NCBI GenBank assembly: GCA_965644265.1
Contig: OZ286462.1
Coordinates: 61,938,001 to 62,002,000, forward strand
From: Glycera tridactyla
Taxonomy: Eukaryota
DNA: 64,000 nucleotides
Direction of reading: 5' to 3'
Shown one piece after another: positions 13,177 through 37,906 of the stretch. The notes under the pieces are model-generated. The model searched no databases, had not been told where the DNA came from, and saw only the letters and a list, made by a program, of their open reading frames with translations. A program made the position numbers and the translations under genes. Position 1 is the stretch's first letter, and each line of letters starts with the position of its first letter.

Positions 13177-13277
13177 CAGCCATCTTGTGTTATCTGGTTG
13201 AACTACATCAGACATGAGGCACCACCTAGTGTCAACTAGGAGAAGCTCCAGTTTGGCTGCCGCCCTACAGATGGCAG
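13177..13277. promoter_or_regulatory. Cluster of three CTCF-type sites (-,-,+)
   Basis: Cores ACACAAGATGGCTG (-, 13177-13190), ACACTAGGTGGTGC (-, 13219-13232) and CCTACAGATGGCAG (+, 13264-13277). Upstream motifs TGTAGT and TCCAGT sit 11 nt 5' of the first and third cores. Confidence 0.65.
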
Positions 13278-14824
13278 CAGGGGCTTGATGAGAGACAGCA
13301 TGCAGTGAGTCTGAAGTGAGAGTGGGGGTTGCATGAGGAGGGGGGTTGACCTTCCCTAATTAGGTCCAGCCCTGACCTCTATTGTGAGCACGAATTACCC
13401 CCCCCCCCCTGACCACTTCCAGTGAGAAGTATTAGCCTGCCCAATTAAGCATGACTGTATGCTACAAGGAGGGTGCTGATTCTGACCTACTTACATACAC
13501 AGCTGCCCTGATTGAATGGCTGGCTGGACCCTCACAACAGTTAGGAACATAGATTAGTCCACCCCTGTGCTATTCTGGGGTGAATGGGTGTCTGAGTGGA
13601 CATAGTTAGAACACCTACGACCATACACACCACAAGTTCACCCCTGATTTGAACCGGGATACCTTGCCAGGAGGACACACATTCACACATAGAACTACCA
13701 TTTTGCTGGGATTCTTGATCGAAATATTTGAGATACTGGATACTGGATTGCTGATACTGTGGACACATCAATTGACAATTTGGATGTACTGGAGATGCAG
13801 CATGAGGTGAGAGAAAGCAGTGATAGAGATATTCAAAGTGATGAACATTTTCAGCTTATTTCCTTAATCTTGGAGATTCACTCGTGACTGGAAGTTGGTC
13901 ATGAAGTGCATACAAAGTTCATGTGATGATCATTCTGGAATATAACCAATATTTCAGGAATAAATCAGACTGTTTTGATGAATTTGAATTATATCAATCG
14001 TTTCCCTACTAATTTCATAGACATCCCATTTTGAGTAGAAACCACCCAATATAATATTTTGAGATTGTGGATCATCTATATATTTCACAGAAGTAGTCAT
14101 GAAGTGGCGCTCAGTGGAGTCCAGAATTATTCGGATGAACATATCAGGATATGGCCCATTGGAAGTAAAGCATTTCAGAATAAATGTAGAGAAAATAGTG
14201 GGTCATAAAATCTAATTCCGCTGGGAGAACGTAATCCCCAATTAAAATTGAACTTGTAGTATCTAATTGCACACTAGAAGAAAAAGACTGCCGTTGGCGA
14301 ATTTGCATCCTGTAATGGAATGTGCAGATTGTAAGGCCGAATAATGGGCAGCCGAAGGTGATTGGGAAGTTAAATCGGAGGTCAGGTCAGGCCACCATCC
14401 TAAAATTGAACTGTGGCTTCTTTGATGTACATATGGCCAACAAGATTGAGGTGGAAATTATTCCCCTCATGAATAACAGATGAAGAAACAATTTCTCTGT
14501 GTTTCCGGCAAAGTGGTTACAGATTCCAGTCATGGGTATTACATTCACACCTACAGGCTGTTCCTATTGAACTTTGAGAATTGATTCAGTTACTCTGGGA
14601 TGTGAAGCCACTTTAGGGCATCCCCGCCCCATCCACCTCTCTACAATTCCTCCACCTAACACTATCATTTTTTTCAACTGAAGTTTTTTAAAGAATGTAT
14701 TATTTAAGAGATTCTCATCATGGATGGATGTAGTTACACCATGTGCAATATGTATTGCTTGTATTTTATAATTATGAATTTTCCAGACTATGAATTTTAG
14801 CAATATAGGCAACGTCATTTCATT

Positions 14825-14932
14825 TTGGCTAAAATGCCATGATTGTGGAATTAGGTGAATCGTGTTGATTCCAATTTTTTGTGCGGCTAAAATGCCATGA
14901 TTGTGAAATTAGTTGAATTGTGTTGATTCCAA
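14825..14932. repeat. Two-copy tandem duplication, period about 60 bp
   Basis: ggctaaaatgccatgattgtg(g/a)aattag(g/t)tgaat(c/t)gtgttgattccaa occurs twice. Confidence 0.9.
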
Positions 14933-15551
14933 AGTTATTCCTGTACATAGCTTAGGAGAGGTGATCTTAACTACTCAAATAACTAGATGGAATTTGAAAT
15001 ATGGACAGTGATGAGTTAAATGTCTGCCCTCAGCTGACATATACATCGATACAAGCAATTTGTTCTGATGAGCGGATACATCCACGAGGTACAAACAAAA
15101 TAGGCAATAGCCCCTCCCTAAGGTGAAGTTCAAATGGTCTGATGCTGGAGGCCTATATGTGGGTTCTAATGGGTTACCACTAACCTTCAGCAACGAGAAA
15201 ATCGAAATCATTTGAATTTCTCTTCTTTATTTCCAGAATGGAGATCATCCTCAGGTTTATTCTTACTCCCAAAACTCAATTTTTTGCAATTTAATTATGT
15301 GATTGCTGAGTTGATCTCCTCACCATGTTAGCACAATCACTGATTATATCAATATCTTTCTCATTTTATTTCAGAACCTCCTCAGACAAATTGGATTAAA
15401 TCTGAGCCATATTGTCAAAAATACCGTCTCAGATGGGGCTCCGCATTGCATGCATGCCAGATGTACTTTCGAATAAGATATTTAAAATGTGATTTCCTTT
15501 CTGCTTTCAGCACGCTGAATGTGTAGCGTGGCAAGTTTAGTGTTGTATGCC

Positions 15552-15737
15552 ATGGATGACATTCAAAGTATCGGCAGTTCGCTTGGTTACAAGTCATCTT
15601 CACGATCCGGACACTCACGTTATTCCCGATCCAGCGCTACCAGTTCTTCGAACCTTAATGTTTGCATCGGCAGTCCCGTCAGCAACAAACTTTCGTCAGG
15701 AATCAATGACATGTACATAGAGTCTAAGACAGACATG
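15552..15737 (+). CDS. Candidate N-terminal coding exon B of an unidentified + strand gene (MDDIQSIGSS...IESKTDM, 62 aa, Ser-rich)
   Basis: Acceptor tttcctttctgctttcag ends at 15510. Start context gccATGG, 62 open codons, and donor ATG|GTGAGT at 15738 (phase 0). Locally CpG-rich compared with the flanks. Confidence 0.7.
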
Positions 15738-15977
15738 GTGAGTAGTTTTTTGCCATTTTTTTTCTAATTTTGTAATAAAAAATCTGATACATTCACTGCA
15801 TGCTGGTGGCTGTCTAAAATAGTCATGACCTCAGTGAGTCCTAGAAAATAGTGATGCATTTTTCTCAGACTTCCTAATTTCAAGAAAATTGAATTGGAAA
15901 AGTTAATCCTTGGAAGCTAGATTGAATCCATGCTGTTCAACCCATCACAACCATCAGCTCTGCACATTTTCCCAGAA

Positions 15978-36322: not shown

Positions 36323-36388
36323 ATGACCCGAAGCATACAGAATCCTTGCATCACTGATGAAGGAGGCGATTACCGCCCGCCCTCCATG
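36323..36388 (+). CDS. Candidate alternative N-terminal coding exon C (MTRSIQNPCITDEGGDYRPPSM)
   Basis: 22 open codons ending ATG|GTGAGT at 36389 (phase 0), the same junction as exons A and B. The first ATG has a weak context. Confidence 0.45.
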
Positions 36389-36867
36389 GTGAGTTTTTTT
36401 TTCTCCAACCATTACAGAGAATGCCATCCATAGCGATTTTCGAGTAGTGGCTACTCTTTTTAGGCTTAAATTCTTGTATTTCACCAGTAATGCTACTTTT
36501 GAAAATCAAGATTTTTCTTACCATTTCATTGCAATTACTAGCACTGCTACTCCTTATAATTGGTACTGTTACTTCTTCGTCCATCAGAGGATGGAATACC
36601 TGTCATTACTAGATAATCATCTTACCTGAATGGATGTAGGTAGCATTCAACTTATGTCATGTATGACAACAGTGAGAGTTGATTCAATCTGTAGAGATTC
36701 CATTCAAAGACCACCTCTATACAAAGGCCACCTGTCTGCAAGGGAGGTCTATGTGGACTGGTTTGAACATGCAATTGAATCTCTCTATAAAGATCACCTT
36801 CGGTTGCATAAAAAAGTGGCCTTTATAGGGAGGTGGTCTTTATATAGGTAATTTACTGTTCGATATA

Positions 36868-37051
36868 CAGTAAAACCTGTCTTGGGAGACCACCCGAAAT
36901 GCCAACGAAAAGTGGTCTCTCAAGAGAGGTGGTCTCTCATTGGAGGTATATTTGACCATGTCAAATACAGAAGAGCCGATAAAGAGTGGTCTCCCATTAG
37001 AGGGTGGTCTCCCAAAAGAGGGGTCTTCACTGTACTAGACAGGTTTCACTG
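36868..37051. mobile_element. Second full copy of the 19039 MITE family, inside a cluster of older relatives (about 36690-37140)
   Basis: Same TIRs and internal sequence, TA TSD, and an extra TCACTGTACT near the right end. Confidence 0.92.
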
Positions 37052-37875
37052 TACTACCATGGTCATAGCTCAGGGTGGCATTTATGGAGAGGTGGTCTTT
37101 AGAGGAGGTTCGACCGCACCTTTGTTCCACTGTATAGAATGAGATCTTGGTAGAATTGAATGGAATCTACAGCCAGGAATAACTTTTGAGTTGGCCATTT
37201 CAAGATGTTCACATAAACCATAACAGGGTGACACCTTCTGACAAGACCACAAATGATCAGTTGACCATGCTGTTATTGTAACCAAACAAGGGCAAGGCAT
37301 CAGTGCTGAAAGGGGCAAGTGGGCAGTTCATGGATGCTGCGTCTGTCAATGAATCCCTGTCACCATTGGCAACTGTAGTCAAGCAACACTTTCTCATATA
37401 TTTCTCATCTGAACTCTCATTCACAGTGTTGTCCCTTTCAAGTTCACTTCCCAGATTCAGAAGAAAATCTAAATGTCTGCTCTCACAAAATTAATGAGTG
37501 TGACTGAAATTTTCTAAATAGGTATATTTTGAAACATATGGGGTATCAGGTTTACCTTGCTTTCTTTTCAGGAAATTGTCACAATGACACAAAATGTCAT
37601 CTCGGTCATTATGTCCTCACTGCATTTACAACTCATTAAGAATCTGATTTTATTTGTTAACTAATGATCAGATCATCATGGGATATGTTTCATTCACATT
37701 CTGAAATCTTGGTAGAGGCCCTCGGTTGCCATAGTTTTCCAAATAATTTACCTCACAAGAGATCAGCCCCCCCCCCCCCCCTTCCCCAAGGTTCTGAAGC
37801 ATCCCCAGGAGCAATCCCCAGGTTCTCATTAGTAATGATGCAATTATGGGAGGGAAGAACAAAGGCATGTGTCTG

Positions 37876-37906
37876 TGTAGTGTTACACCTGTCCACTAGA
37901 TGGCAG
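37876..37906 (+). promoter_or_regulatory. CTCF-type site with upstream motif
   Basis: TGTAGT-GTTACACCTGT-CCACTAGATGGCAG, with an exact core consensus. It lies 1.5 kb downstream of exon C. Confidence 0.7.

Follow-up and report, generated by a model that had tools for sequence, protein, structure and literature searches.

A cluster of putative full-length CTCF-type sites with a vertebrate-like upstream element in non-coding DNA of Glycera tridactyla

A 64,000-nucleotide (nt) stretch of the Glycera tridactyla genome (GenBank assembly GCA_965644265.1, contig OZ286462.1, positions 61,938,001 to 62,002,000), here called the window, contains a dense group of sequences resembling binding sites of the zinc finger protein CTCF. 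These sequences are clustered at 13.0 to 23.2 kb, in non-coding DNA. We estimate a probability of roughly 0.6 that the interval from 13.2 to 23.0 kb holds about 12 selectively maintained sites for a CTCF ortholog, which would together form an insulator-type multisite platform. The identification of the sequences as putative CTCF-type full-length sites, in which a 14-nt core is accompanied by a second element upstream, is well supported in silico.

Enrichment of CTCF cores between 13 and 23 kb

For the cores we used a CTCF matrix with 19 columns, of the JASPAR MA0139 type, purely to assign scores, and real and shuffled sequence were treated alike. The null model consisted of dinucleotide-preserving shuffles, with 300 shuffles for both the position weight matrix (PWM) scan and the two-part scan described below. 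At a threshold of at least 12 bits, the PWM gave 17 matches over the whole window versus 2.35 in shuffles, and at 13.0 to 23.2 kb it gave 11 versus 0.50, an approximately 20-fold excess over a null whose maximum was 4. The excess was also seen at 16 bits or more, with 5 matches in the same interval versus 0.05. A matrix-independent scan with the International Union of Pure and Applied Chemistry (IUPAC) consensus CCASYAGRKGGC, allowing at most one mismatch, found 11 matches; 100 shuffles gave 2.24 ± 1.42 and never as many as 11. The cores have in common that none contains a CpG.

Cores standing alone also occur outside the cluster. Two precede 13 kb, at 2057 on the plus strand (18.9 bits) and 6311 on the minus strand (13.0 bits). 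An initial annotation of this DNA, made from the letters alone, had stated that no comparable sites lie between 38 and 64 kb; this is true of two-part sites, but core-only matches exist on the plus strand at 55674 (14.4 bits) and 55755 (12.8 bits).

Coupling of the cores to an upstream element

The model of a two-part site was set beforehand from the vertebrate literature as a core plus TGCAGTTCC, located 5 ± 1 nt before TGG-CCA and matching in at least 6 of the 9 upstream positions. Both the upstream consensus and the register were taken from publications because a motif picked after seeing the data would have biased the test. With this fixed model, 9 two-part sites were found in the whole window versus 0.42 ± 0.67 in shuffles (maximum, 3), and 8 of the 9 fall within 13177 to 22753. 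The initial annotation had proposed that both the site density and the 11-nt coupling to an upstream motif would exceed dinucleotide-shuffled controls, and both did, at 11 versus 0.50 for cores and 9 versus 0.42 for two-part sites. Approached from the cores and with a tolerance of ±1 nt, 7 of the 17 scoring at least 12 bits match TGCAGTTCC at 6 or more of 9 positions, versus a null mean of 0.48 (P < 1/5000). Among the clustered sites, 8 of 12 carry the upstream module by the measure of at least 6 of 9 positions and a linker of 4 to 6 nt. Control searches, in which the upstream motif was placed on the downstream side, reverse-complemented, or moved to other offsets, returned 0 to 2 sites, the sole exception being an offset that is generated by the partner core in the divergent doublets described below.

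Several observations bear on the form of the element. The hexamer AGTTCA stands at an equal offset in four sites (13175-, 16020+, 16926-, and 22673-), as had been noted initially; in 2,000 trials with 25 random positions, a hexamer recurring at any one fixed offset in four or more of them turned up just once. In column counts over the 13 main sites, T occupies position -9 in 11 and position -8 in 9. The combined pattern AGTTC-N9-MCWSYAGRKG has 5 matches versus 0.32 in shuffles. The local consensus, TGYAGTTCA, compares with vertebrate TGCAGTTCC, with AGTTCA here standing for AGTTCC there. The initial annotation had called TGYAGTTCA lineage specific, a description that did not survive the comparison, the motif being the same as vertebrate CTGCAGTTCC, with AGTTC in common. 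Judged by its sequence, then, the upstream element is essentially the vertebrate motif and not a new one. That it is genuine and vertebrate-like is argued by the excess under the fixed model, by the 0 to 2 sites in the controls, and by the AGTTC-N9 excess.

The 13 main sites, lettered in order of position, are as follows; upstream matches are counted out of nine positions.

Site a, 13177..13207, minus strand: two-part site; core 13177-13190 ACACAAGATGGCTG, weak at 8.6 bits; upstream element 13199-13207 TGTAGTTCA, 7/9 to TGCAGTTCC, 5-nt linker.
Site b, 13219..13250, minus strand: two-part site, left half of divergent doublet 1; core 13219-13232, 14.4 bits; upstream element 13242-13250 TGGAGCTTC, 6/9, 6-nt linker.
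Site c, 13247..13277, plus strand: two-part site, right half of divergent doublet 1; upstream element 13247-13255 TCCAGTTTG, 6/9; core 13264-13277, 14.6 bits.
Site d, 15978..16009, minus strand: two-part site, left half of divergent doublet 2; core 15978-15991 ACACTAGATGGCAG, 13.1 bits; upstream element 16001-16009 TGCTGTTTC, 7/9, 6-nt linker.
Site e, 16006..16036, plus strand: two-part site, right half of divergent doublet 2; upstream element 16006-16014 AGCAGTTCA, 7/9; core 16023-16036, 16.1 bits.
Site f, 16928..16958, minus strand: two-part site; core 16928-16941 CCACCAGGTGTCAC, 20.1 bits; upstream element 16950-16958 ATCAGTTCA, 6/9.
Site g, 19684..19714, plus strand: core 19701-19714, 12.6 bits; weak upstream match TGGTTTTCA, 5/9.
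Site h, 19928..19958, plus strand: core 19945-19958 CCACCAGAGGCCAC, 16.8 bits; poor upstream match TGTAATGTT, 4/9.
Site i, 21943..21956, plus strand: highest-scoring core overall, CCACTAGGTGGCAG, 22.3 bits; the normal register holds no upstream element.
Site j, 22675..22705, minus strand: two-part site, in tandem with site k at 49 nt; core 22675-22688 ACACTAGATGGCAG, 13.9 bits; upstream element 22697-22705 TGTAGTTCA, 7/9.
Site k, 22724..22753, minus strand: two-part site; core 22724-22737 CCACCAGATGTCAG, 18.3 bits; upstream element 22745-22753 GTTAGTTCC, 6/9, 4-nt linker.
Site l, 23011..23024, minus strand: core only, CCACCAGAGATCAG, 14.2 bits.
Site m, 37876..37906, plus strand: outlier; core 37893-37906 CCACTAGATGGCAG, 19.2 bits; partial upstream match TGTAGTGTT, 5/9.

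This list departs in places from the one given initially. The seven 31-nt strings (hexamer, 11 nt, and core) proposed there were each found exactly once, with the qualification that for plus-strand sites the number quoted was the start of the core, the hexamer beginning 17 nt earlier (13247, 16006, 19928, and 37876). At three of the seven the upstream match is only modest, with 6/9 at 13264+, 5/9 at 37893+, and 4/9 at 19945+. Six further cores are present as written, one of which, 19981+, is weak at less than 8 bits by the CTCF matrix, and two more, 19701+ and 23011-, had been missed. Three of the cores described as bare, 13219-, 15978-, and 22724-, do carry the upstream element, with linkers of 6, 6, and 4 nt, respectively.

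At the strongest core (21943-21956), an AGTTCA is found at 21919-21924, 10 nt or one helical turn beyond the normal register, which may be chance. A third motif, TTCCACAATKG, was seen beside two of the sites and was rejected, having 10 matches versus 5.5 expected and therefore no enrichment.

Doublets, tandem pairs, and orientation

By the PWM scan, the clustered sites follow one another as 13175-, 13217-, 13261+, 15976-, 16020+, 16926-, 19698+, 19942+, 21940+, 22673-, 22722-, and 23009-, with 37890+ as an outlier. Two pairs are divergent, 13217-/13261+ and 15976-/16020+, and their start-to-start offset is an identical 44 nt. The two 9-nt upstream elements of each doublet have 4 nt in common (13247-13250 and 16006-16009), giving a partly palindromic center, in the second doublet reading GAAAC-AGCA-GTTCA. 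Two other pairs are arranged in tandem, at 42 nt (13175/13217) and 49 nt (22673/22722) from start to start. A full site spans about 31 nt, so that paired sites nearly abut.

Alternative explanations

The sites might be relics of transposable elements (TEs) or of decayed minisatellite arrays, in which case their positions would reflect insertion history and no selected function at the locus. CTCF sites have been spread through repeats in mammals and zebrafish, the 42- to 49-nt spacing could be the remnant of a tandem unit, and a family resembling miniature inverted-repeat transposable elements (MITEs) bears core matches within the window. Those repeat-borne matches, however, are just two and weak (19162+ and 36991+), and neither is among the 13 sites. 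A blastn search at word size 9 with ±200 nt around 19 sites returned no similarity between sites. In-register flank identity averages 25 to 27%, the value of random pairs, and motif positions account for the few pairs above it. Lag autocorrelation and low-stringency self-alignment of 12 to 25 kb revealed no segmental duplication and no colinear self-similarity. A hidden tandem duplication with a period of about 2.76 kb, suspected from site-to-site distances of 2,759 to 2,780 nt, was rejected by lag autocorrelation and low-stringency self-BLAST. A Pfam search of the 20 longest open frames of 12.5 to 24.5 kb gave no significant domain and no TE protein remnant. These comparisons see copies within the window, and at that scope they agree with the initial statement that the sites are not one repeat family. 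Moreover, the motif positions are preserved amid random neighbors, which is unlike the neutral decay of a repeat. Derivation of the sites from such relics thus appears unlikely, and a young repeat family and chance are excluded within this window.

The MITE-like family itself is about 190 bp long, with copies at 19035-19220 and 36866-37057 and fragments at 7673-7776, 5917-5977, 3835-3879, 9580-9610, and 20282-20309. It has 27-nt terminal inverted repeats that are 96% complementary and internal tandem units of 16 to 18 nt, and its motif AGGTGGTCTCYCA occurs 13 times versus 0.21 expected. Each full copy bears the weak CTCF-core match CTCCCATTAGAGGGTGGTC, at 10.5 bits.

The motif could alternatively be read by another multi-zinc-finger protein, either a lineage-specific CTCF paralog or an unrelated factor, with a function that has nothing to do with CTCF. 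The analysis works from sequence alone, and the local core has features of its own: T is preferred at the "K" position (AGRTGG), the end is CAG instead of the vertebrate GCGC, and E-boxes (CAGATG and CAGGTG) lie inside some cores. About half of the cores, though, read CTAG rather than CCAG and so contain no E-box. Both halves of the site and the spacing between them equal those of the published CTCF full-length site. We know of no other factor with a two-part grammar of this kind, and we regard a different reader of these sites as quite improbable.

In a promoter-choice locus, as in the vertebrate clustered protocadherins, every group of sites would correspond to one alternative promoter or first exon. 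Groups of sites do recur every 1 to 3 kb, CTCF motifs of the annelid Dimorphilus are mostly located at promoters, and a masked stretch follows site m at about 300 bp. The longest open frames, on the other hand, have no Pfam match, and codon periodicity is at background in all but a Penelope-like element; the screen for it brought out only that fragment, at 56235-57089 on the minus strand. The segments adjoining the clusters are not paralogous, and the masked runs are bordered by simple repeats rather than by exon-like sequence. We therefore consider an array of alternative promoters very unlikely. Finally, the motif set and hexamer were chosen after the data had been seen, and weakness is evident in 19981+, the core of 13177-, and the upstream parts of 19945+ and 37893+. 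Even so, a chance aggregation picked from very many windows has a negligible likelihood, since the 9 versus 0.42 comes from a literature-fixed model with a Poisson tail of about 1e-9, which is still small after correction for about 250,000 windows, and concordant results come from the IUPAC scan and from the hexamer-offset null.

Comparison with known CTCF systems

In vertebrates, a CTGCAGTTCC-like upstream element is bound by zinc fingers 9 to 11, typically across a 5-bp linker (PMC12885311). This second contact raises affinity about 3-fold in electrophoretic mobility shift assays, and the IL3 insulator needs it to block enhancers; the upstream module is found on most characterized insulator or barrier sites versus 13 to 15% of all vertebrate sites (PMC12885311). 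Full-site oligonucleotides used in experiments read TGCAGTTCC-AAAAC-TGG-CCAGCAG..., which gives TGCAGT, 11 nt, and the core (PMC11194110), in keeping with the initial proposal that the spacing here is like that of vertebrate full-length sites. The sites in the window resemble vertebrate full-length sites of the insulator type (IL3 insulator, HS4-type; PMC12885311) in having the same core, AGTTC in common (CTGCAGTTCC versus TGYAGTTCA), the same dominant linker of 5 nt ± 1, and the identical TGCAGT + 11 nt + core register. They differ in that the host is apparently an annelid, that the last upstream base is mostly A and not C, that the core is T rich and free of CpG, and that the module is present on 8 of 12 sites as opposed to 13 to 15%.

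The clustering has vertebrate counterparts as well. Boundaries of vertebrate topologically associating domains (TADs) likewise hold many sites in both orientations within about 10 kb of non-coding DNA, but the locus described here does not have a clean divergent left/right layout. Clustered CTCF sites are thought to give robust insulation at such boundaries. Mouse SINE B2 (a short interspersed nuclear element) and zebrafish DNA transposon expansions are likewise a dense local supply of CTCF motifs, whereas the sites here lie in mutually unrelated, nonrepetitive sequence.

The closest parallel to the paired sites is the mammalian 2xCTS, defined by at least two motifs a few tens of base pairs apart. 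In 2xCTSes, motif pairs are 33 to 58 bp apart in TSP50 and palindromic in TP53, and two CTCF molecules bind the close pair (PMC4562119); the offsets of 42, 44, 44, and 49 nt in the window place its pairs within the same definition. The two divergent doublets are distinguished from 2xCTSes by their identical offset and by upstream elements that overlap by 4 nt, and, in a further difference, full engagement of both molecules at a doublet would probably be mutually exclusive. A BORIS paralog is reported to be absent outside vertebrates (Kadota et al., 2020). Site clusters, two-part sites, and double sites are thus already known in vertebrates, and what would set the present locus apart is its host lineage and the geometry of its doublets.

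Proposed function and its significance

By analogy with vertebrate structural and biochemical work, zinc fingers 3 to 7 of the annelid protein would read the 14-nt core, fingers 9 to 11 the TGCAGTTCC-like element, and finger 8 would span the linker. With the module on 8 of 12 sites, the locus could be a high-affinity, constitutive CTCF platform, on which doublets and triplets spaced 42 to 49 nt apart in both orientations may hold many CTCF molecules at once. The divergent doublets might accept CTCF in either orientation but, we speculate, probably not with both upstream contacts made simultaneously, because the upstream elements overlap by 4 nt. The absence of CpG from the cores implies that binding would be insensitive to methylation. 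From vertebrate precedent we infer that this non-coding DNA would most likely serve as a constitutive insulator or domain-boundary platform that does not respond to methylation. We doubt that it anchors extruded loops, since no such signal is seen in protostomes, echinoderms, or amphioxus; blocking of loop extrusion by CTCF has not been found in any of them. The boundary or loop-anchor hub inferred in the initial annotation gained no support from the analysis.

A number of points weigh against a CTCF platform of this kind. Drosophila CTCF sites are without the upstream motif, fingers 9 to 11 have diverged there, and the module "may be restricted to vertebrates" (PMC12885311). According to a 2026 preprint, the motif bound by all CTCF orthologs lacks the vertebrate 5' part. 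Neither CTCF-anchored loops nor an orientation bias is found in protostomes, and CTCF-dependent loops are not found in echinoderms. The CTCF motifs of the annelid Dimorphilus differ from this cluster in that most are single and lie at promoters. Within the cluster, orientations are mixed (- - + - + - + + + - - -), giving local divergent doublets and no global divergent boundary pattern. All of the statistics come from one 64-kb window, and those for the cores depend on one matrix, used in the same way for real and shuffled sequence and backed by the matrix-independent IUPAC scan. CTCF orthologs have been reported in annelids.

When and how CTCF gained its vertebrate properties is an active question, and papers from 2026 hold that the upstream motif is possibly confined to vertebrates. 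A limited literature search turned up no description of this module in spiralians. A spiralian locus in which most sites bear the module at the vertebrate register would argue that 11-finger reading is ancestral in Bilateria and was lost in flies, and it would also argue for high-affinity clustered CTCF platforms outside vertebrates. Somewhat short of even odds, in our estimation, is the broader proposal that the upstream CTCF contact predates vertebrates, going back to the protostome-deuterostome ancestor, and that annelids use it for insulator-grade multisite platforms. That tentative proposal includes a bidirectional doublet, previously undescribed, in which two divergent cores would share one overlapping, partly palindromic upstream element.

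CpG depletion, masked stretches, and other repeats

The observed/expected ratio of CpG is 0.34 over the 64 kb, most of it non-coding, and comes near 1 only in the 1-kb bins 52001-53000 and 63001-64000. Such a low ratio suggests germline methylation across the whole region. In an invertebrate with mosaic methylation, intergenic DNA would not usually be methylated to this extent, unless the stretch belongs to a long transcribed gene.

Four masked runs of N, at 8479-8596, 38100-38212, 42576-42655, and 46683-46760, abut simple repeats (CT-rich or poly-C tracts and ATGG and CACC microsatellites), and a fifth, at 49035-49164, has no abutting simple repeat. Though exon sized, the masked stretches are probably low-complexity sequence or gaps and not exons, since simple repeats flank them.

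A search of Rfam gave no match in the window. The Penelope-like retroelement frame at 56235-57089 on the minus strand comprises 285 codons and has an HTH_animal match and a borderline GIY-YIG match. Its relatives are at most 65% identical; those with a named source come from the amphioxus Branchiostoma lanceolatum (54%) and the brittle star Amphiura filiformis (53%), neither of them a vertebrate. The core-only CTCF matches at 55674+ and 55755+ sit just 3' of this frame. Nearer to the cluster, a CT-rich tandem repeat at 25284-25533 consists of two copies of units of 76 to 93 nt, with 75 to 80% matches.

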